Positions 1 to 59,195 of a stretch of DNA of 59,195 bases are shown here, piece by piece. Source of the stretch: Pelomyxa schiedti (taxonomy: Eukaryota > Protista > Evosea). Made by a program: the position numbers and the translations under genes. The notes under the pieces were generated by a model. That model worked only from the letters and a program-made list of their open reading frames with translations, made no database searches and was not told the origin of the DNA. How positions within the stretch are numbered: position 1 is the first letter of the stretch; every line of letters begins with the position of its first letter. Location: positions 1 through 59,195 of the forward strand of contig JAHLWZ010000512.1 of NCBI GenBank assembly GCA_020536535.1, given 5' to 3'.

Positions 1-200
1 ACTTTGAGAACGTCTACAACCACGGCGAGGACTACTACGAGGAATGCGCCGCCAACAACGAGGCCGTCAACGCCGTTACCGCTGCAACATCCAGTAGCTC
101 CGCCACGTCGTCGTCATCCGACCCCGCTGACGCCCCCCTGGCCGGCACAAAGAGGCCCGCCTCTGCCCCAGCCTCAAAGAACCCTGATCCTCTAACTTGA
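1..200 (+). CDS. CWC2: Pre-mRNA splicing factor Cwc2, 3' end of last exon (second copy/haplotype, partial)
   Basis: Matches 27586-27785 with 4 differences (122, 125, 188, 191), all synonymous third positions; ends ..KNPDPLT-TGA at 198-200. Confidence 0.9.
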   Translation, partial: FENVYNHGEDYYEECAANNEAVNAVTAATSSSSATSSSSDPADAPLAGTKRPASAPASKNPDPLT

Positions 201-277
201 CCCCGCTTTTGAGGAAAGGAATAATATGTTTCCTATTTCTTTGGAAAAACCCTTGTAAACAGCTAAGAGGCATTGAC

Positions 278-2495
278 ATGGCTCTAAGTAACGGAAAAAA
301 ACCAACCAGTTTGGCGTTGTCCGGCAGGCCAACTCCTGATTTCGTTGAAACACAAGAACAGTAGTTGCGGAAACACTGAGAACTACGGCAGGTATTAATG
401 CAACAAGGGGAATGCAGCAGGGACGCCGTGTCCCGAGCGTGCAGTGCTGGGCGGATGCCTTGGATGCCCGACGGGTGGGACATCAACCAGCCGCTCAATG
501 AAGCTGGGCGCACGGCACTCCACGTCGCGTGCCTGGGGGGCCACGCCGGCCTAGTGCGGCAGCTTCTCGCGGCCGGCGCCGTGCGCGCCCCGCCTATTGA
601 CCCCAACGCAGCCGACCAGGACCAGTGGACGCCCCTTGTCCTGGCGTGCTATGAGGGCCGCACCGAGGTCATGGACATTTTGCTGCAGCACCCTGGCGTC
701 GACGCGAGCAGCACCTCCCCCCTGCACTATGCCTGCCTCGGGGCTCATGAAGACGCGGTGGGAGTTCTGCTGAGGCACAACAAGCTTGTTGACGTAAACG
801 CCCTGGGGACAGGCCTATTCGAAGGCCTTACGCCATTGCACGTGGCTGTGTTTCATAAGGTGCCAGGGGTTGTAAGAGTTCTGTTGGGAGCAGACGGCAT
901 CGATGTGATGAAGCGCAACTCCAACGGGGAAACGCCACTGGAAGCGGCAGAGAAAGATCACAACACTGACGTGTGCAATGTGCTGAAGGAGCACATATCC
1001 CAGAGGGCCCAGAAAATGGCGGAAAAACTAATCACCACTGGCGCATCACCACAAGCACAACGCGCATCATTGTTTGGGGGGATGCCAGTGACATCAGTCC
1101 CTCAAAGTGCACAAACATCAACAACCTCCCTTGTTGCCTCAGCAGTCAAAGAACCACAAAGTCAAGTCAACATCGAGGGGGTTGACCTGCCCGCTTTGCT
1201 TGAGAAGTTGAGGTTCTATGAAGAGAATTATCCAGCACTCCTTGCCAAGCAGAGTCAAATGGAGAGCGAGATCAGCAGGATAACACAGGAAAAGAATGAG
1301 CTCATGACAATGACTGACAACCAACTGAGGGACAAAACCACGAGAATCAAGGAGCTCGAGCAAGAGAACTCGTTGCTCAGATGGTTCAAGGTTCCTTTTT
1401 TCTTTTTCACTTTTGTTGATTAATTGGAACACAAGGACACATCTGAAACCATGACATCGTTGATTGGTGCCAACATCGACTCATTTGAAATGAAGAAATT
1501 CCTTGGATCTGGATCAAATGCAGCGACTTTTCAAGTTGGGTTCTTTCCAAGTGGCACTGGAAGATTGGGGACAAATGACAGCAGCAGTAGTAACAAATAC
1601 CCAGATAGCAGCACCTCGACAACTACGATGGCAATGAAAGTTTTGTTCAACTGGGAAAGCACACCACAGCAAACACTGATCAAGCAGAAGTACATGAAGG
1701 AATGTCTGGTCCTTGCATCACTCCCACTTCACAGAAATGTCATCCACCCTCTTGGCACACTTGTCATCCCTCGGTGTGTGTTCTTTCACCACCAACAATT
1801 CACCAACTAATATCTCGGGAAAAAGATTCCCACAGGAGTTCATTGATGCAATTCCATCAGAGCAGATTGTTAGCACTGAGTGCTGTGTCACACCTTGAGA
1901 GGTCACGAATTGTCCACAGGTTCTTATCTCTCCCTGCAATTACTATCACCAACCCTCAACCCCCAATACCACACAGGGACATCAAAGAGGACAACATCCT
2001 GGTTGACCCGGCCACACACAAGCTCACACTGATTGACTTTGGAGAGGCAGAGGAGTGCACAGGCCCCGACCTGCAAATGACAGTTCACAGGACAGGGCAG
2101 GTGTGGGGCAACACCGTCACACAATGCCGCCCGAGGTGTGCACGCTCAGCAAGGACATCATGAGGTCGCCACAGCCCTCCCGCGTGTTCTCGTTCTCCAA
2201 GTGTGACTCCTTCTCGCTCGCCCTCGCGTTCTATGACTCGCTGCTGCCACAGGGGACCAAGTTCATTGGTCAGTTCAAGGGTGACATGTCGTCCTTCAGC
2301 GCGTCGCTTCTCCCTCCGCTCCCTGGCCAATTCTGCTCCCTAACCCCTGCAACAACAGGATCCAACTGCACGATCAGTGGAGTGTTGAATACGATGATGT
2401 CACGTGACCGTGCAACAAGGCTATCTGCTGACGAGGCATTGCGCCTCACTGCTGATCAGTCCAATCACAGGAGATGCCCATTATTCGTGGACTGA
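278..2495 (+). pseudogene. Ankyrin-repeat / coiled-coil / PINK1-like Ser/Thr kinase gene; ankyrin part intact, kinase frameshifted
   Basis: ORF 398-1423 has ankyrin repeats (TALHVAC, TPLVLAC, PLHYAC, TPLHVAV, TPLEAA) then a coiled coil. Intron 1391-1435 joins in frame to kinase motifs GSGSNA, AMKVLFNW, HRDIKEDN, DFGEA, TMPPE. Frame breaks near 1866 and near 2120. Possible short first exon ATG278-287 with intron 288-380. Confidence 0.75.
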
Positions 2496-2649
2496 TTTGG
2501 AAGAAAGGAAAGAAGAAGGAGGGTTTTTCTCGTTTTTTTTCTTTTTGATCAACAGTTTTTTCCTTTGGAGACATGGCGGTGATTACACCGTCTGCCTCCC
2601 TGTTTTTTTATTGGCAAGTTCACAAAGGGTAGTCAGATGGAGGCTAGAT

Positions 2650-2754
2650 CTAATAGCCAACACCGAGGAGGTAGTCAGCCATGTCCTCGACGACCTTGGT
2701 GGCATTCCCGGGCTGCTTGGGCTCGACGTAGATTCCGACGAGGATGCACTTTCC
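2650..2754 (-). CDS. Profilin, C-terminal fragment (second copy/haplotype, cut by gap)
   Basis: Identical to 28772-28876; encodes GKCILVGIYVEPKQPGNATKVVEDMADYLLGVGY*. Confidence 0.9.
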   Translation of the reverse strand, partial: GKCILVGIYVEPKQPGNATKVVEDMADYLLGVGY

Positions 2755-2854: not shown

Positions 2855-3136
2855 CTTGACTGTCTTGGAGTCCAGTTCAATTGTTTTGATCTTGAAGTCC
2901 ACACCAATTGTGCTGATGTAGCTCTCAGTGTATGTGTCATCTGCAAATCGCAGCAAAAGGCAACCTTTGATGAGTCGTAAATTCATTTTGAATGCTTGTG
3001 CTAAGAAAGGGATACTTTTGCCAACTCCAGAGTCACCGATCAGCAACAATTTGAACAAGTAGTCACTGATCAAATGTTAGGGGATTTAGCAGCACTGTCA
3101 AACAGAAACACACTATTCAGGGGTCATGCTCGTCAT
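2855..3136 (-). CDS. RAB1: Rab1/Ypt1 GTPase, 5' part (3' part lost in gap)
   Basis: Removing two GT-AG introns gives [61 protein letters not shown], the canonical Rab1 N-terminus. Confidence 0.95.
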
Positions 3137-3392
3137 GTTGTTGTGTCTGTCTTTATTTCCTGTGAACCGTTGTTGTTGGGCTTTGTTTTTTATTTTTTTT
3201 ATTTGTTTTGAAGAAAAAATTCTGGTCTTTTTTTCTTTCAAATGGGGGTAGATATTCGTCGATTTCCCCCCAAACGCGGCGTATGAATGGGGTTAATGCT
3301 GGGAATTGACAAGACAGTGGTCGTTTGGGGTGTTACGGTTAATTTATTGTGACAATGGTTGCAACTTGAAGGGTTGCGAGAACACCCTGGGT

Positions 3393-4520
3393 TTACCGGG
3401 ACTCTCCAAGAATTTTCGTTACCAGTTGCAAAAAAGCATCCTGAACGTTGGCCCCGGTCATTGCGGAACACTCTCTGTTGTGGATGAGTTGTGATATTGA
3501 TAACGCGAAGACACATGAAAGGGATGCCTAATTCGTCGGCTAGCTGCCTCCCAGTCGCAGTCGGCACTTGCCGATTGGCTTCATCATCACACTGTTTTTT
3601 TGAATGTGGTGAGAATTACATTAGTAAGTAAATTTATTAGTGAGTAAATTTAATTCTATTTTTGGGAATGTGGTGGAGAATTACGGGGGTAAATAAATGT
3701 AATAAATTTTATTCTATGTACGGCACCATGTTGCCAACTAAGATTTTGTAAGCTCCTGGCGAGTGCTCTTCGAGCCTTCTGCACCAGTCTTTGATATAAT
3801 CAAATGTGTATGTCTTTCTGATGTCACTTGATGAGGGACAAAAGGTTGGAATTAAAAATAAGAAAAAATGTCATACTAGACCAGTAGTGCTCCATGTTTG
3901 CACCTAAAATCTAGTATTTTGAGGAACTGTACAATTGAAGATTGTCTTACAGCAACTGGGAACCCACACGCGTCTGATTGGGAAGATAGGTGAAAGAGAA
4001 GAAAATGGGGAATAGTAAATACGCTGGATTAAAGCAGCCGTCCCACTATTTGGTAATTTAGTGAAATAAATAGACGACTTCAAACTACAATTTGAATTGC
4101 CACAGGTTTATCTCCAGCTCGTATTGGGTGAGTTACAAAGTCGACCCCCGTATTCTCGACATAAATACTTGAGAACGTATTGCTCTGAGAGTAAAATGAA
4201 TGCATAAACCAAGATCAGCAAGGAACCCTACTACGAGACGGTTTTTCAAGGCCGCTGTATATGTTGAGCACAACGATAAGTAAAAAAAAAAAGAGGTGGA
4301 AATACTTTTGCCAGTGCGCATCTCTCCTAGCATGACAACTCTAAGTACAATTGCACCGCTGTCCAAGTTGGAGTTAAAACGAGAGAGAGGAACAAATCCA
4401 CACTGTTAATTTGTGTATTAGTTAAGCCAAAAAAAAAAACCTGGCATCAGGGAGGAGTGGCAACGGGCTCGGGCTTGTGGGAGGAGGGGACACCGGTGTC
4501 TCCGATTGGCTGCCGCCCAT
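3393..4520 (-). CDS. Divergent Rab-family small GTPase with N-terminal MGGSQS and no C-terminal prenylation motif
   Basis: Spliced model: MGGSQS..LRVVMLGEMRTGKTALKNRLVSNTFSSIYVENTGVDFV..IQIWDGC..GALLVYDI..ILVGNMCD..ELGIPFIECSAMTGANVQDAF..GESR*. Confidence 0.8.
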
Positions 4521-24519: not shown

Positions 24520-25203
24520 TCATATAGACAAGCCATAGACAGTAGTTATACAGTAGCTGGAATGATAGGGTTAGTGGGGAATGTAAATTTTGGATGTTTT
24601 GGGGGAATAACATTGACTTGTTCTCCCATCTGTGGGTCACGCTAGCATCAGAGGATGTGTCCCAAAAACAGGCACTTGCTGTGTGTAACCCAGCTCCATT
24701 CTTTTTGTAGGTTAGTAGAACACCCCACCCTGCAACTTTCTCAACAAACTTTTTGCATTATCAGACATGACACAATATATTTATAAGGTTTGTTCATAAC
24801 AGTGAGTCTTCTGAGTGTGTTTTCCAAAATCTGATTTGTCCACAACGCCACATTTGCCTGAGCATACACAGTAGTCCGCGTGAGTGCCGATTCTATGGAC
24901 TCCTGTATGATACTATTCACAGACTCTATATTTAATGAGTAAGTAGTTCATTCAAGGGCACCGCAGAACCAACACCGCAAAAAAAGCAACAACAACAAGC
25001 AAACCCTTTGAGAACAACGGGTCCTCGGTACCCTCCACAACTCCCACAATGTCGTCGCCAACACCCCCGCCCCGCGACGATGACGTCACCGTACTAGGTG
25101 CCGCTTGGCTCGGCGTGCCGGTATCCCCCATATCGACGTGCCGAGAATTCCTTGTTGATGACTGAACGGGTGGTTTCCACTGCGGTGCATTGTTGGCCAA
25201 CAT
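24520..25203 (-). CDS. Dynein light chain Tctex-1 (DYNLT family)
   Basis: Spliced: [87 protein letters not shown]. Start is at 25203 or 25131. Confidence 0.9.
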
Positions 25204-25308
25204 GATGAGGAGGACAGGCAACACGACGTGGAGCACCAGCACCTCAGAACAGGATGGAAAAAAAGAAAATACAAAAAAAATAAAAGACAAACCTGTTTCC
25301 AAATACAC

Positions 25309-27785
25309 ATGACAGGGACGTCGTCGTACGGGGTTGGGACCACGATCATGCCCCCTCCATTCGTAACCGCCCTATCATCGTCTTCGTCGTCGTCGACTAG
25401 CGCGGCGACTACGTCGGGGGAAGGAGGAGGAGGAGAGGGCGGGGACGCGGCCAACGGGGGAGCCCCGCCGTCGGTACCCGTGGTTAATCCAGTGCCCCCG
25501 CAAATTCTGGACAAACCAGCGAGGAAACAAGTCAAGAAGATAACCCACTACACCCCAAACACAAGCGGTATGTTTTNNNNNNNNNNNNNNNNNNNNNNNN
25601 NNNNNNNNNNNNNNNNNNNNNNNNNNNNNNNNNNNNNNNNNNNNNNNNNNNNNNNNNNNNNNNNNNNNNNNNNNNNTATTTTATTTTATTTTATTTTATT
25701 TTATTTTATTTTATTTTATTTTATTTTATTTTATTTTATTTTATTTTATTTTATTTTATTTTATTTTATTTTATTTTATTTTATTTTATTTTATTTTATT
25801 TTTGTTTGGTTCGTTTGTTGTTATGTTTTGTTTGGTTTGTTTGTTATTTTGTTTTTATCTATGCTTTTTTTTGTGCTGAATATTGTTTTGTTGTTGTATT
25901 TGCTTTAGTTTATTTTAGTGTGTTTATTTTGGTTTTAACGCGTTGCTTAGGTGATTACAATATTTGGTACCATCGATATTGTGGATACGAGTACAAGGAG
26001 TCACGGCGGGATAGGTCTGCCACTTTACTCCACCCCTCACTTCCCTCCTTTTATTGTTACCTTCATTCACGTGTAGCCACACACTTTGTGGTGGCGTTGC
26101 AGGGGTGACATGACCCGAGTGAACATTCTGAAGGACGCTGGCAGAACCCACGCTGATGATGGTGCTCCTGTCTGTATTCACTTTGCAATGGGGAAATGTG
26201 CTTTGGTGTGTACTAAAAGAATTAAAACATCTTCTCACTACCTTCAGGGGTCTGAGTGCAGCTACAAGCACCAAATTCCCACAGAAGATGATGAAAGACG
26301 CACTGGGCTCACTCAAGATGTATTTGGCCGTGAGAGATACAAGTGAGTAGCAGCTTAATACATTGGAGACTAATTTTCTACAGGACCGATCGTGATGATA
26401 TGGGTGGTGTGGGAAATTTCTCTAAGGAAAACAGAAGTGCGTTCCTTTGGTCATTAAAGATTTTGACCTTAACTATTCCAACAGCTCTCTATCTTGGAGG
26501 CCTGAAAACTGAAGTGCCCGTTCCCGAGATGGAGACCTCTCTAAGGAAGCACTTTGGCGAATTCGGTGAACTTGAGTATGGTATGTTTGACTCGGGCATT
26601 TCTTATTTGAATTTACTTGAATAGTTCGTGTTCTTGCTGGACGTGGAATCGGCTTTGTACGTTACAGACTTCGTACAGCTGCAGAGTTTGCTAAAGTTGC
26701 AATGGGGGATCAGACACTTGACCATGGTGAAGTTTTGAACGTGAGGTGGGCCTACACGGATCCAAATCCAATTGCCAAGGCACATGAAGAACAAGCAACT
26801 GCCAGTCAGTTTATTAATGCTGTGGAGAGGAGGGTCCAAACTGTATGCTGTTATATTGTTCCAGTTAATGTTGACCAATCTTAACAGATGACACCGAAAG
26901 AAAAGGCTGAAATGGAAGCCCTACGACAATTGGAGCAGCTTGCTGAGAATCCTGATTCATACCCGGATACTGATGCACAGTTCACTGGGTACTGTTCCCA
27001 TATGCGCTGGTGGCCTTTAATTGACTATTCATAGAAAACCTGGAGGAGAGCCAGCCGCGCCCACTGTCAAGAAACCGCGCATCCAATACTCTGCCCCTGC
27101 TATTTCCTACAAGTACAAATTTATTGGACCACAAAGTATCCCAAGGCACTTGGTCGAGAACACAGAGAGGCAGCAAATCAATCAGCCCACTCCGACAACC
27201 ACGCGGTCAGTTTTGCAAATCTTCGTTTATTTCTATTCTAACACACGCAACAGATCGGAAACTGAAACAGTTTACCAATTCCAAACACCAGTGGAGTATG
27301 ACCAGTGGGACCCCCAGACATATGCAGCAGCCAAACAGCATTACTCTGCCAACCCGCACACCGGACAGGTAAAAATATATACTACCTTCCCATTTACTTC
27401 CCATTACCAAAGCAATCTTCCAAAACATCACACAATATATACCTAATACTGTAATTTCTCATTTACACTTACATTGTTACAGTACCACCCGTACTCGTAT
27501 GGGTTCTATTACCCGAGGCAAATAGCACCCGAGCCGGAGATTCCCGAGGAGAAGCTACGCCAGAACGACGACCAACTTCAATCGTACTTTGAGAACGTCT
27601 ACAACCACGGCGAGGACTACTACGAGGAATGCGCCGCCAACAACGAGGCCGTCAACGCCGTTACCGCTGCAACATCCAGTAGCTCCGCCACGTCGTCGTC
27701 ATCCGATCCGGCTGACGCCCCCCTGGCCGGCACAAAGAGGCCCGCCTCTGCCCCAGCCTCAAAGAACCCTGACCCCCTAACTTGA
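25309..27785 (+). CDS. CWC2: Pre-mRNA splicing factor Cwc2 (Torus/CCCH zinc finger + RRM)
   Basis: Spliced motifs KPARKQV, DYNIWYHRY, DAGRT, CIHFAMGKCALGSECSYKHQIP, DVFGRERY..DRDDMGGVGNF, RTLYLGG, AEFAKVAMGDQTL..LNVRWA..DPNP. Intron 1 spans a gap. Confidence 0.93.
25577..25676. other. Assembly gap (100 N)
   Basis: N run inside CWC2 intron 1, next to a microsatellite. Confidence 0.99.
25677..25800 (+). repeat. (TTTTA)n microsatellite in CWC2 intron 1
   Basis: About 25 visible perfect pentamer units running into the gap. Confidence 0.95.
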
Positions 27786-27871
27786 TTGAAAAAATCTGAG
27801 TAGAACCAAACCAAAAGTCCGAATTTGATTTACTTGAAAAACCGTTTTTTTTCCCAACAGTTCGCGTACTC

Positions 27872-28618
27872 ATGTCGTTGCTAAGCTGCAACCCCAACGA
27901 CGCAGTGGCTGATGCGTGCGAACGTGGGTGGATGCCTTTGATGTCGAACGAGTGGGACATCAACCAGCCAATAGACGGCGACGGGAACTCGGCGCTCCAC
28001 TTGGCGTGCAAGGGGGGCCACGTCGGGCTCGCGCGGCAGCTTCTGGCCGCCGGCGCCTGCCGTGACCCGCCGATCGACCCAAACAGGCGCAACACGGAGG
28101 AGTGGACGCCCCTTACGCTGGCGTGCAGCCAGGGCCACGTCGGGGTCGTGGAGGTGCTGCTGCAGCACCCCGGCGTGGACGCCAGCAAGGACTGGCCCCT
28201 CCACGTCGCCTGCGTGTGGAACCGTGCGAACGTGGTTGCGCTGCTGGTTAGGAGCCGGCGGTTCGACGTCAACGCGGTGGCGAACCGGGTGCGCTGGATC
28301 TTTGACGGAATGACCCCACTGTACGCGGCTGCGTACTTTGAGAACCTAGAGGGTCTCAGGATTCTGCTAGGAGCAGACGGCATTGATGCTACGAAGCCGG
28401 AACCCCTGGGCGGCCAAACGCCACTCGATATAGCAACTGAGGTGAATTTCCTTGAGGGATGCAATCTGCTGAAGGAGCACATAAACCGCGGGCTCGGAAA
28501 TTGGAGGACAAACCCACCACCACCGCAGCAGCAAACACAACCCAAACAACCACAGGATTACGCGCGATCGCGCAACAAGGTTGTAGGCTGGTACGGGATA
28601 CCGAAGTTTGAATTCTGA
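27872..28618 (+). CDS. Ankyrin-repeat protein (ankyrin-only version of the cassette)
   Basis: 248-aa ORF with SALHLAC, TPLTLAC, PLHVAC, TPLYAAA, TPLDIA repeats; about 50% identical by manual alignment to the ankyrin region of 398-1423. Confidence 0.9.
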   Translation: MSLLSCNPNDAVADACERGWMPLMSNEWDINQPIDGDGNSALHLACKGGHVGLARQLLAAGACRDPPIDPNRRNTEEWTPLTLACSQGHVGVVEVLLQHPGVDASKDWPLHVACVWNRANVVALLVRSRRFDVNAVANRVRWIFDGMTPLYAAAYFENLEGLRILLGADGIDATKPEPLGGQTPLDIATEVNFLEGCNLLKEHINRGLGNWRTNPPPPQQQTQPKQPQDYARSRNKVVGWYGIPKFEF

Positions 28619-28771
28619 GGAAAGGAAATAATAAAGGGTTGGGTTTTTCTCGTTTTTTTTTTCTTTTTGATCAACAGTTTTTTTCCTTTAGAGACAGGCG
28701 GTGATTACACCATCTGCCTCCATGTTTTTTTTATTGGCAAGTTCACAAAGGTAGGCAGATGGAGGCTAGAT

Positions 28772-29348
28772 CTAATAGCCAACACCGAGGAGGTAGTCAG
28801 CCATGTCCTCGACGACCTTGGTGGCATTCCCGGGCTGCTTGGGCTCGACGTAGATTCCGACGAGGATGCACTTTCCGGTCTTGACTGTGACGACTCCTCC
28901 CTTGTTGCCCTTGCCGTAGACGGACCTGGGGTCGGCCTTGACGCACATGTACTTCAGCTTTCCGCAGAGGATTCCAGAGCTCTGGGGGACTGATGGGTCC
29001 TGTGTTCGCATAAACGTTAGGTCAAACAAATAAGCAAGTAATCATAAAAGATGCGCGACGGAAGTGCAGAAAAAAAAAAACTTTGCGTACAAACGATGTT
29101 TAAATGGTTGTTGTTAATTAAAATGTATATTTGCGTGTTGCATTTTTTGTTTGAGTGTGTTAATTGAACGATGAAAGTAAACGCACAGTGAAGTTCTGGA
29201 CGAGTTTTGCGGCCTCCTTGTTGGCAACAACATCGGGGAATGTTGCGGACTTGGCCCAAACAGCGCCGTTTGTTGCGTCGAGGATGGCAGCGGAGTCAAC
29301 GAAGCCAGATCCGACGAGGTTGGTATCGACGTATGTTTGCCACGACAT
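28772..29348 (-). CDS. Profilin
   Basis: MSWQTYVDTNLVGSGFVDSAAIL..one intron..GKLKYMCVKADPRSVYGKGNKGGVVTVKT..MADYLLGVGY*. Confidence 0.95.
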
Positions 29349-29871: not shown

Positions 29872-30335
29872 ATGTCGTGGCAAAACTACGTGGACGACAA
29901 CCTGGTGGGCTCTGGATTCGTTGATTCTGCGGCAATTCTTGGTTCTGAGGATGGCTCAGTCTGGTCCCGTTCCTCAGAATTCCCATCACTCAGTGCTTTG
30001 ATTCCAGGGACAGAAGTTGCCGAGGTTGTATCTATCATCAAGGACAACTTTGAGGTTTGTTTTGATAGGAGTACCTTATTTCATAAATGACTCATGTGTA
30101 TCTTAAGAGGGAACATACACCTCAGAGCAGGGGAATATGGGCCGGCGGCCTCAAGTACATGTGCGTGAAGGCTGATACAAGGTCTGTGTATGGAAAGGGC
30201 AACAAGGGCGGAATTGTCACTGTGAGGACCGGGAAGTGCGTTCTGGTTGGAATATACGGAGAGGGAAAGCAGGCCGGAAATGCTGTGAAGACTGTGGAAG
30301 ACTTGGCCGACTATCTCATTGGTGCCGGATTTTGA
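29872..30335 (+). CDS. Profilin (divergently transcribed paralogue)
   Basis: MSWQNYVDDNLVGSGFVDSAAIL..one intron..GGLKYMCVKADTRSVYGKGNKGG..LADYLIGAGF*. Confidence 0.95.
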
Positions 30336-49346: not shown

Positions 49347-51229
49347 CTAATGAAAGTGACGGTGCTGCAGGTTGAGGTCGTGTGTGTATAGCCAGCAGCA
49401 TGTTGTGTCAGAGTCAGAGGGAAGATGAACACTCCAGGCAAACTCATAAATGTCGTCCATTGTGATGTCGGGGAAGTGCCTCATGGTGAATGACGCAATG
49501 ATTGGTGACTGTAGCACAAGCCCAAGCAGCTTCTCTTTGATAATTGCTGCCGTGATGCTGGGGAAACATCGCAGCATCATCTTCCATGTTCCCAAGTCAA
49601 AGTCCAATTGGGACTTACGCCAGTCGAGGGACAGGACCTGCACACATGAATGGAATGAGTGAGAGAAAGTATTTGTTACGGGTACCTCGTCGAGGGTGAT
49701 GTGGAACTTATGGATGAGCCACTCTGCGCAGTTCTCTTGTCCCCAGTAAATCATTTTGGAGAGTAACAGGTTATCGTGAGCTGTGATGTGCTCACGTTCC
49801 AGTTGGAAGTGCCTTATCAGCCACTTGACTGCCTTTGTTGACTCTACCCCAACATTGTTTGGGAGGCATTCCGCAACAGACTCTTTGGTGAACTCACCCT
49901 TTGATGCTACCTTTTTGACTTGTGAGAAGCGGGCACCTTGAATACTCTCTGCCAATATTCTGCAGAGGAGCACAGAGCGCTTTGGTTCGGAAATGTGGAA
50001 CTTTTCGATGAGGAGGACGGGCGCTGTATCTACATTGTGTTTGGTGAGGAGATGCTCAATACAATGCACAACAGTACTCGCGGACACTCTTTGTTACAGA
50101 ATTTACTGAGGTTCTCCTAGGGGAAAGTGAACAAGGAGAATGTCGACGTTGCCCACTCCAATACATCCACCCGGTTGATTTCATTCAATGCACTATAGCC
50201 TGGAGGCTGGCGCAACTTGAGGAGGGGCAATACATACTCACAGATTTTGACAGAGTCACTTCCCGTGCCTCCAAGGCAACCAACGAGTGTGGCGAGTGTA
50301 CTCGGATTCTCAGGGAATGTTTCAAAACACCACTTGACAACACCCAAGTTTTCACTCTTGCACGAGCGTAACTGAATCTTCATGCGCGAATAGCGGCGGA
50401 ACTGTGACGCCAAATCGAATGTGTTTACCATCCACTGAGCCAGTTCCAAGTGGCCCCCGGACACAGCAGAATGAAGCGGGGCAAAAAACTCCCAAGGCTC
50501 CCTGAAGCCGAACCTCTCGACCAGCCACCTGGCCACGTCCAAGTGCCCCTTTTTGCATGCCCTCTTCAAGATTGGGAACTCCCTCACATGGTCAGCAAGC
50601 CTCCCACCCTCCAACTCGCCACCACATCTACCTCCCCAAGCTTCTTCCTCAGTTGTCATCGTGGTTGCAGTGGTCGTGGTCATAGTAGTTGTGGTGGCGG
50701 CGGAGGTTGTCCCACACCACACCAACCCAGGCCAGTTCCCATCAACCAGCCACTGTGCCGTCGCCAAGTTGCCGGCCCTGCACAGCCCAGCCAACACATG
50801 CACAAACTCCTTGGCCACCCTCCTCTTCATCCTCATCTCCACTGTCATTTCCCCAGGTCCGGCCTCGGGGCTGGTCTCCTTCCTGTAATTGGCCAGCAGC
50901 CAGTTGACACACAGGCCGCCGCCCGTGCCCGTGCTCGCGGTGGGGGTGGTGTAGCAGGGCGCAGCCTCGGCGGCGGCCTCGATGAGGCGGTAGTACCTGT
51001 CGTAGTGGCGCAGCAGGGAGCGGCACACGCGGCCGACGAGGGGGAACATGGCCTCCCCGACCCGCATCGTGGTCACCACCGCGTCCCTCGAGTCCACGCG
51101 GGTGAAGGGCGTGGCCGGGGTGACCAGCAGGGAGCGGGGGACGAGCCACGGCATGACCCACTCCCACACCGTCCGCGACATCATCACCACTCGTGCGTGG
51201 TATTCCCCTTTTGTTTCCAACGACGACAT
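49347..51229 (-). CDS. Degenerate ankyrin-like repeat protein, possibly a pseudogene
   Basis: Ankyrin-like units LCRAGNLATAQWL, ACKKGHLDVARWL, AVSGGHLELAQWM. TAG at 50117-50119 and a frame change to ORF 49347-50087 could be a ~60-nt intron or a lesion. Confidence 0.65.
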
Positions 51230-58209: not shown

Positions 58210-58309
58210 NNNNNNNNNNNNNNNNNNNNNNNNNNNNNNNNNNNNNNNNNNNNNNNNNNNNNNNNNNNNNNNNNNNNNNNNNNNNNNNNNNNNNNNNNNN
58301 NNNNNNNNN
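58210..58309. other. Assembly gap (100 N)
   Basis: N run preceding a duplicated CWC2 segment. Confidence 0.99.
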
Positions 58310-59195
58310 GACATGACCCGAGTGAACATTCTGAAGGACGCTGGCAGAACCCACGCTGATGATGGTGCTCCTGTCTGTATTCACTTTGCAATGGGGAAAT
58401 GTGCTTTGGTGTGTACTAAAAGAATTAAAATATCTTCTCACTACCTTCAGGGGTCTGAGTGCAGCTACAAGCACCAAATTCCCACAGAAGATGATGAAAG
58501 ACGCACTGGCCTCACTCAAGATGTATTTGGCCGTGAGAGATACAAGTGAGTGGCAGCTTAATACATTGGAGACTAATTTTCTACAGGACCGATCGTGATG
58601 ATATGGGTGGTGTGGGAAATTTCTCTAAGGAAAACAGAAGTGCGTTCCTTTGGTCATTAAAGATTTCTACCTTAACTAATCCAACAGCTCTCTATCTTGG
58701 AGGCCTGAAAACTGAAGTACCTGTACCCGAGATGGAGACCTCTCTAAGGAAGCACTTTGGCGAATTTGGTGAACTTGAGTATGGTATGTTTGAGTCGGGT
58801 ATTTCTTATTTGAAATTTACTTTAATAGTTCGTGTTCTTGCTGGACGTGGAATCGGTTTTGTACGTTACAGACTTCGTACAGCTGCAGAGTTTGCTAAAG
58901 TTGCAATGGGGGATCAAACACTTGACCATGGTGAAGTTTTGAACGTGAGGTGGGCCTACACGGATCCAAATCCAATTGCCAAGGCACATGAAGAACAAGC
59001 GACTGCCAGTCAGTTTATTAATGCTGTGGAGAGGAGGGTCCAAACTGTATGCTGTTATATTGTTCCAGTTAATATTGACCAATCTTAACAGATGACACCG
59101 AAAGAAAAGGCTGAAATGGAAGCCCTACGACAATTGGAGCAGCTTGCTGAGAATCCTGATTCATACCCGGATACTGATGCACAGTTCACTGGGTA
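58310..59195 (+). CDS. CWC2: Cwc2, internal exons (second copy/haplotype, partial)
   Basis: Aligns to about 26106-26991; the differences seen are intronic or synonymous. Confidence 0.9.

Follow-up and report, generated by a model that had tools for sequence, protein, structure and literature searches.

Why does one scaffold of Pelomyxa schiedti carry the same three genes twice, with nearly unchanged outer genes and two very different inner ones? The stretch analysed here (the window) is the complete scaffold C512 (JAHLWZ010000512.1, 59,195 bp) of the P. schiedti assembly, which comprises 52.4 Mb in 5,337 scaffolds. The order CWC2 3' end, ankyrin-repeat gene, profilin 3' end, reported in a preliminary description of the sequence, was recovered at 1-2754 and at 27586-28876. 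The copy at 27586-28876 lies on the main path of the assembly (X) and its ankyrin gene is called AnkB. The alternative copy at 1-2754 is called X' and its gene AnkA.

The duplicated arrangement is a product of assembly and scaffolding. The probable explanation is one locus at which a decaying ankyrin-kinase (ANK-kinase) gene exists in two very old haplotype versions, seen twice because loose branches were left unmerged. We infer that the two versions are alleles, carried together by a cell or distributed over different cells, and that the part which still functions is the ankyrin module. The deep dimorphism is real in sequence. Anatomy, family relationships, divergence and graph topology were observed directly and are reported as such.

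Assembly of the second copy

P. schiedti DNA originated from seven micromanipulated cells of a polyxenic and polyeukaryotic culture and was pooled after multiple displacement amplification (MDA) (PMC8887013). Assembly was performed with SPAdes in --sc mode using k = 21 to 121, followed by P_RNA_scaffolder; 8.6% of the BUSCOs are duplicated in the genome assembly (PMC8887013). This scaffolder joins contigs where RNA-seq mates align uniquely to different contigs, and inserts 100 Ns by default (PMC5834899). Three runs of 100 Ns are present in the window, at 2755-2854, 25577-25676 and 58210-58309. AnkA and its flanks constitute the contig ahead of the first run (contig 1, 1-2754), and another short contig stands behind the last run (contig 4, 58310-59195).

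The first 121 nt and the last 121 nt of contig 1 match the main contig exactly, and contig 4 likewise shares exactly 121 nt with the main path at each end. These ends are thus exactly k nt long, and both contigs cover the same genes as the main path. Three further contigs of the assembly (C4032, C4565 and C2915) have 121-nt ends that match the main path exactly on both sides. C2831 and C4320 have tails of 121 nt identical to the main path and heads identical to it over only 116 nt; the two heads are mutually identical across their first 121 nt. Since 121 is the largest k used by SPAdes, contigs with such ends are taken as unmerged alternative branches of the graph, and 1-2754 and 58310-59195 are best read as alternative haplotype branches of a single locus. 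The alternative copy X' contains the following features.

1-200, plus strand: 3' end of the last CWC2 exon; the first 121 nt equal 27586-27706, stop codon TGA at 198-200.
201-397: intergenic stretch from the CWC2 stop to the AnkA start; unalignable with its 86-nt counterpart on X.
398-1390, plus strand: AnkA exon 1, five ankyrin repeats (approximately amino acids (aa) 26-205) and a coiled-coil-like linker; Pfam Ank_2, E = 5e-39.
1391-1435, plus strand: AnkA intron, 45 nt, GT-AG, at the same position in paralogues.
1436-1773, plus strand: AnkA exon 2, kinase N-lobe with Gly-rich loop and AMKV lysine strand; 51-74% aa identity to paralogues.
1826-1919, plus strand: remnant of AnkA exon 3, with an internal deletion between 1871 and 1872.
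1977-2495, plus strand: remnant of AnkA exon 4, with catalytic loop RDIKEDN, DFG, PPE and C-lobe; ancestral stop at 2493-2495.
2496-2633: 3' shoulder (ankyrin and profilin 3' untranslated regions (UTRs)), with several indels and an identity of about 88% to 28612-28755.
2634-2754, minus strand: profilin 3' end, with coding sequence (CDS) at 2650-2754; exactly 121 nt equal to 28756-28876, then contig end.
2755-2854: 100-N join, a product of the RNA-pair scaffolder without true adjacency; the next Rab exons are on contig C3264.
58310-59195, plus strand: second piece of X', 5' part of CWC2, 97.97% identical to 26107-26991, with 121-nt identical ends; behind a 100-N join.

The corresponding features on the main path X are these.

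26107-27785, plus strand: CWC2, with the Torus domain in 26086-26343.
27786-27871: intergenic stretch from the CWC2 stop to the AnkB start, 86 nt.
27872-28618, plus strand: open frame of AnkB (248 aa) with five ankyrin repeats and without a kinase; Pelo_6484 [Pelomyxa schiedti] in the annotation.
28556-28590, plus strand: probable remnant of a kinase C-terminal motif, matching AnkA 2396-2430 at 25 of 35 positions.
28612-28876: 3' shoulder and profilin 3' end; the profilin gene runs on to approximately 29029.

Pfam searches returned Ank in both inner genes, Profilin, and the CWC2 Torus domain. For the CWC2 flank, 196 of 200 positions agree between 1-200 and 27586-27785, and the four synonymous single-nucleotide polymorphisms (SNPs) reported earlier were found at 122, 125, 188 and 191. 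All four lie in the half nearest the ankyrin gene, as had been remarked, and this is imposed by the assembly, because a branch contig must start k = 121 nt ahead of its first difference. The profilin CDS had been called identical, and 2650-2754 and 28772-28876 show no differences. The described limits of identity were also reproduced: it is lost at the CWC2 TGA (198-200 and 27783-27785) and returns from the ankyrin stop codons (2495 and 28612) onward. Divergence is 0-2.8% on the CWC2 side (four synonymous changes in the last 79 nt) and approximately 12% in the 140-nt 3' shoulder; over 2500-2754 and 28617-28876 identity is 93.5%, with several indels. The stretches past the CWC2 stop (197 nt in X', 86 nt in X) could not be aligned to each other (score 22; shuffle mean 17.1, standard deviation (sd) 2.9), and for the X' stretch at 201-397 no DNA match was obtained within the same genome.

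The join behind contig 1 is false, because the Rab gene that is cut at 2855 is carried onward by another contig: C3264 overlaps 2855-2975 by 121 nt and then continues with Ras-family exons. The cut gene is Rab1-like. An identity of 9 nt (CTTGACTGT) between the profilin continuation and the start of the Rab contig looks coincidental. The join at 25577-25676 is corroborated by C2831, which bridges the gap. The order of the second haplotype is C2831, 58310-59195, a shared stretch, 1-2754, and again shared sequence; for CWC2 at 26871-27706 no alternative contig was found. Alternative branches were located along the window as follows.

2855-3510: C4032, 97% identical.
24813-26055: C2831, C4320 and C4565.
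26107-26991 and 27586-28876: contig 4 and contig 1, respectively.
49777-50486: C2915 (L055), 97-98% identical, 121-nt identical ends, with an extra segment of approximately 340 nt relative to the main path.

At 24929-25304, upstream of CWC2, three distinct variants are present (main path, C2831 (L011) and C4320 (L054)), with one tri-allelic site. At least three haplotypes are therefore present in the pooled assembly in this interval; their source may be heterozygosity, cells with several nuclei, or the pooling of different cells.

Several observations concern the neighbourhood of the flanks. A CWC2 exon 1 upstream of the second gap was considered and dropped, as no Pfam Torus match was obtained there. 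Profilin-like exons at 30150-30324 (minus relative to 28783-28957) form an inverted copy 1.3 kb away with 75-78% nt identity, and a profilin-like exon on contig C1212 (486-609) is a 90% copy. The contig that follows the second 100-N gap opens directly with a tandem array of a 5-nt unit (TATTT) at 25677-25937, and this array differs between the alternative contigs (C2831 95%, C4565 85%).

The two ankyrin genes and their family

For domain assignment in AnkA, exons were searched one by one, and the joined translation was used solely to place the premature stop. Against the Ank profile cut-off of 27.3 bits, Ank_2 scored 133 bits in AnkA and 92 bits in AnkB, and five repeats were registered on the TPL anchors in both. 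The AnkA linker gave weak coiled-coil-type matches. Protein kinase (PF00069) motifs are recognisable in AnkA exon 2 (GSGSNAATF and AMKV) and exon 4 (RDIKEDN and DFG); a 47-aa stretch at 1972-2112 (5 nt of intron and the start of exon 4) reached 30 bits for Pkinase, just under the cut-off of 31.7.

As assembled, the catalytic domain of AnkA is not contained in one continuous frame, since it carries two lesions. In exon 3, approximately 140-190 nt are missing between 1871 and 1872 relative to all four paralogues that could be aligned across the exon. The parts on either side of the deletion lie in different frames, and translation runs into a TGA at 1896-1898, absent in those four paralogues, which limits the product to 467 aa. 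Exon 4 contains a frame-shifting insertion of 2 nt near 2117-2118, between DFG and PPE, which is absent in six paralogues. In the protein database, no annotated product of AnkA was found within the length window searched.

AnkB is annotated as a shorter protein: the Pelo_6484 model has 190 aa, starts at 27932 (the second ATG) and contains an in-frame intron of 114 nt at 28442-28555. The actual product may instead be the uninterrupted 248-aa frame. Within the annotated intron lies the code for the last ankyrin helix (CNLLKEH), a segment conserved in AnkA and the paralogues. The final exon of the annotation, from 28556 onward (~60 nt of coding sequence), contains a kinase-like scrap that is read in another frame. 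Its alignment to AnkA 2396-2430 scored 30 (shuffle mean 17.4, sd 2.8, maximum 28; z ~4.5), which suggests that AnkB arose from an ANK-kinase gene by deletion. The output (kinase) domain appears to be lost in both versions. The preliminary description had set a gene with a kinase output domain against one that is sensor-only; this contrast does not hold, because the kinase of AnkA is broken by the out-of-frame deletion and the 2-nt insertion and AnkB has none.

For identification of relatives, a six-frame search of the genome was performed with the AnkA ANK domain. AnkB was the top match (52%), followed by at least 35 full-length copies with 40-46% identity. In the reverse search with AnkB, AnkA was best at 52% and the next match had 45%, making the two reciprocal best hits. 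The family is often arranged in tandem (contigs C130, C786, C530 and C129). Downstream kinase exons on the same strand were found at 14 of the 38 loci that were fetched and scanned. An intact member on C649 consists of an ANK frame with a coiled-coil tail followed by kinase exons; its C-lobe scored 37.8 bits, above the Pfam Pkinase threshold, and its nearest solved relatives are PINK1 structures (E ~5e-4). In the assembly, two contig pairs hold other ANK family genes with 94-98% identity (C1641 with C695:22900-26594, and C2184 with C2114). These pairs are probably haplotigs; one of them has a 320-nt indel, and 9% of the residues differ between its ANK domains.

In a maximum-likelihood tree of 36 ANK domains, AnkA and AnkB were placed as sisters with support of 100/99. 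They share a stem of 1.25, and their tips measure 0.94 and 0.92 against a median tip of 0.24. Their sister placement points to descent from one family member at the position between CWC2 and profilin. Gene conversion from assembled paralogues was considered and rejected, as no window of AnkA or AnkB exceeded 77% nt identity to any paralogue and in most windows the two matched each other best. The idea of a donor copy at another genomic site was likewise rejected: in DNA searches with both cassettes, the ANK parts matched only each other.

Exact-product look-ups of the AnkA and AnkB open frames in public assemblies returned nothing. In the protein database search, the best matches beyond AnkB (Pelo_6484, 51%) were generic ankyrin proteins with at most 37% identity. 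A metagenome scan with the CWC2 C-terminus detected no relative, and a scan with the AnkA ANK domain yielded only ankyrin proteins with 30-38% identity and without the flanks. No other Pelomyxa sequences were found in the protein database search or in the two metagenome scans.

Divergence and the ankyrin binding face

Identity between the ankyrin proteins had been estimated by eye at about 50%, and the alignment bears this out with 102 identical residues among the 202 aligned in the ANK domains. The scaffold and variable motifs quoted at that time are present in both domains. For the ANK domains, dN (nonsynonymous substitutions per site) was 0.35-0.40 and dS (synonymous substitutions per site) 0.62-1.09 depending on the method, giving a dN/dS ratio (omega) of 0.36-0.59; 36% of the four-fold sites differ. 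Among the assembled paralogues most splits are shallower (dS 0.05-0.57), and other assembly bubbles, with 2-6% divergence, are far exceeded.

"Deeply diverged alleles or replaced cassettes", as the pair was first termed, is a fair wording: the flanks are the same, the two genes are closest relatives, dS of 0.6-1.1 contrasts with 0-6% in the flanks, and the copies are alternative graph branches. The terms "swappable" and "hypervariable" go too far for a locus with only two versions in the assembly.

For comparison of surfaces, the binding face was taken to be ankyrin positions 2, 3, 5, 13, 14 and 33, which we assume from their randomisation in designed ankyrin binders; the variable positions found here coincide with those randomised in designed ankyrin repeat proteins. 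AnkA and AnkB are identical at 8 of 28 binding-face positions (29%) and at 72 of 127 framework positions (57%; p = 0.011). The enrichment of differences on the binding face, as originally claimed, is confirmed, but it is no stronger than in other family pairs at similar divergence (22% identity at the binding face, 52% in the framework). Differences between AnkA and AnkB fall in columns that vary family-wide (p = 4e-8).

For AnkA and AnkB, omega was 0.98 at the binding face and 0.53 in the framework, with dS near saturation. Because of this saturation the values neither support nor refute positive selection on this pair. Four closer pairs of family members were analysed in the same manner (L022/L025, L026/L031, L028/L033 and L035/L039, on contigs C130, C38, C1870, C695, C1641 and C530). 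In these, omega was 1.9-7.1 at the binding face and 0.3-1.0 in the framework, and replacements were significantly concentrated at the binding face (Fisher p 2e-5 to 3e-3). As a whole, the ANK(-kinase) family behaves like a diversifying receptor repertoire. In the members examined, the ANK exons are not interrupted.

Weighing the explanations

For one locus with two old versions, the course of events would be as follows. The gene in the interval would be a single member of a large, fast-evolving, lineage-specific cytosolic family whose members combine five ankyrin repeats with a coiled-coil linker and a kinase of divergent sequence. AnkA and AnkB would derive from one ancestral member at this position and would have diverged deeply while the flanks were kept near-identical. 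AnkB may have lost its kinase by an internal deletion that left the out-of-frame C-terminal scrap, and AnkA by the out-of-frame internal deletion and the 2-nt insertion. Both versions would retain an open, expressible ankyrin protein-binding module. During assembly, SPAdes would have left the branches of the second haplotype unmerged, and the scaffolder would have attached them to the scaffold ends. The split could be so deep because two types were maintained over a long time, because an old tandem pair underwent reciprocal loss, or because a large duplication of recent date carries fixed paralogues.

The assembly resembles a de Bruijn haplotig bubble in its common ends of k = 121, in the coverage of the same genes at 94-98% and in the 100-N joins set by an RNA-pair scaffolder. 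Unlike in such a bubble, the core is a homologous gene with 52% aa identity and another architecture (2.3 kb against 0.83 kb).

Four points weigh against a single locus with two allelic versions. Neutral alleles would not readily account for a split older than most paralogue splits. SPAdes pops isolated SNP bubbles, and flanks that look identical are flanks without dense differences. The lesions in AnkA could in principle be an MDA chimera or an assembly error. Finally, exact k-length ends would also be produced by a large, very recent segmental duplication.

This last point leads to ordinary paralogy, in which a region of tens of kb would occur twice per genome, as a recent segmental duplication or as polyploid homeologues, with AnkA and AnkB fixed and the remainder collapsed onto one path. 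Repeats in general give common ends of exactly k-mer length, the family has tandem arrays and near-identical copies elsewhere, and the duplicated BUSCOs fit as well. However, the main contig runs through uninterrupted, and no outer edge of a duplication was seen on the scaffold. Since branches are scattered across the 59 kb and three variants occur at 24.9-25.3 kb, pooled haplotypes fit better than a local segmental duplication. Paralogy of this kind is considered unlikely, and it is still given some weight.

A further possibility is an ancient two-type locus under balancing selection, acting in self/non-self, mating-type-like, or symbiont or pathogen recognition. Specificity would then reside in the ANK binding face, and the kinase would be dispensable in both types. 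Several observations agree with it. The boundaries are sharp and idiomorph-like, the split predates most of the diversification of the family, dense haplotype differences cluster around the cassette (24.8-28.9 kb), and binding-face codons in the close family pairs carry the signal of diversifying selection given above. Against it stand the number of known versions, which is two, the omega of about 1 at the binding face of this pair, a skew that matches any family pair, and the absence of the signalling domain from both versions. The idea is improbable. A recognition or mating-type role for AnkA and AnkB remains speculative and is no finding.

Comparison with known systems gives likenesses of differing reach. 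As in fungal mating-type (MAT) and heterokaryon incompatibility (het) loci, near-identical flanks give way sharply, at one and the same position, to sequence that is highly diverged or cannot be aligned. Alternative sequences, conserved flanks and abrupt boundaries are all present at the locus, the common position being deduced from the assembly graph. Classical fungal MAT idiomorphs are unrelated sequences, and in this strict sense the term does not apply to AnkA and AnkB, which are clear homologues. Loci of the het type have many alleles and show positive selection or trans-species polymorphism; here, in contrast, there are two versions.

A precedent within Amoebozoa is the mat locus of Dictyostelium discoideum with the gametologues MatA/MatB (57% identity) and MatC/MatS (PMC5580921). 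Both loci have alternative versions with homologous, strongly diverged genes (57% for MatA/MatB, 52% for AnkA/AnkB). Unlike the ankyrin(-kinase) genes described here from sequence, the Mat proteins are small homeodomain-like regulators with demonstrated mating phenotypes.

Plant clusters of nucleotide-binding leucine-rich-repeat (NLR) genes share with this family the large, lineage-specific tandem arrangement and the diversification of a repeat surface (omega 2-7 in close pairs). A single member with very old haplotypes and decayed domains is a likeness as well. The domains differ, with ANK, coiled coil and divergent kinase here and NB-ARC and leucine-rich repeats there. Regarding architecture, ILK and TNNI3K carry ankyrin repeats at the N-terminus and a kinase or pseudokinase behind them, and ankyrin repeats likewise precede the kinase in the Pelomyxa family. 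The Pelomyxa kinase is, however, very divergent, and orthology to the animal proteins was not found.

Reciprocal loss would account for a split older than the flanks without balancing selection. An old tandem pair AnkA-AnkB would have lost one gene in each haplotype, leaving pseudo-alleles, and tandem arrangement is indeed common in the family. Two independent, precisely placed deletions would be required, yet no relic of a partner gene was found, the intergenic stretches measure only 197 and 86 nt, and the common 3' UTR starts at both stops. In addition, the AnkB tail aligns with the kinase C-terminus of AnkA just ahead of this common 3' UTR, as expected for one gene. Little probability is assigned to this scenario.

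Very improbable is an artefact in which contig 1 is a chimera formed during MDA or assembly, or stems from a co-cultured organism. MDA-amplified DNA, the several eukaryotes in the culture and the two odd lesions in the kinase part would allow it, but both junctions lie at homologous positions (CWC2 stop and ankyrin stop), the flanks reach 88-100% identity in noncoding sequence although they have SNPs and indels of their own, the nearest relative of AnkA is AnkB, and the companion branch 58310-59195 extends the same haplotype upstream.

With two very old versions of one locus as the preferred explanation, the scaffold record is corrected in that two of its three 100-N joins set alternative haplotype pieces beside unrelated sequence. 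To read the scaffold as a 27-kb duplication, or to count its CWC2, profilin and ankyrin genes twice, would mislead. The pooled Pelomyxa sample contains at least two, locally three, haplotypes, and one interval has diverged far beyond the 2-6% of the other bubbles.

If a locus with two old types were confirmed, it would provide a concrete handle on sex, ploidy and self-recognition in these multinucleate anaerobic amoebae. If the recognition reading were true, the locus would be an extreme case of family-wide ANK-kinase sensors diversifying their binding surfaces. The ANK/coiled-coil/kinase family, with at least 35 genes and an excess of replacements on the ankyrin binding surface, carries the signature of a receptor-like repertoire and merits a study of its own.

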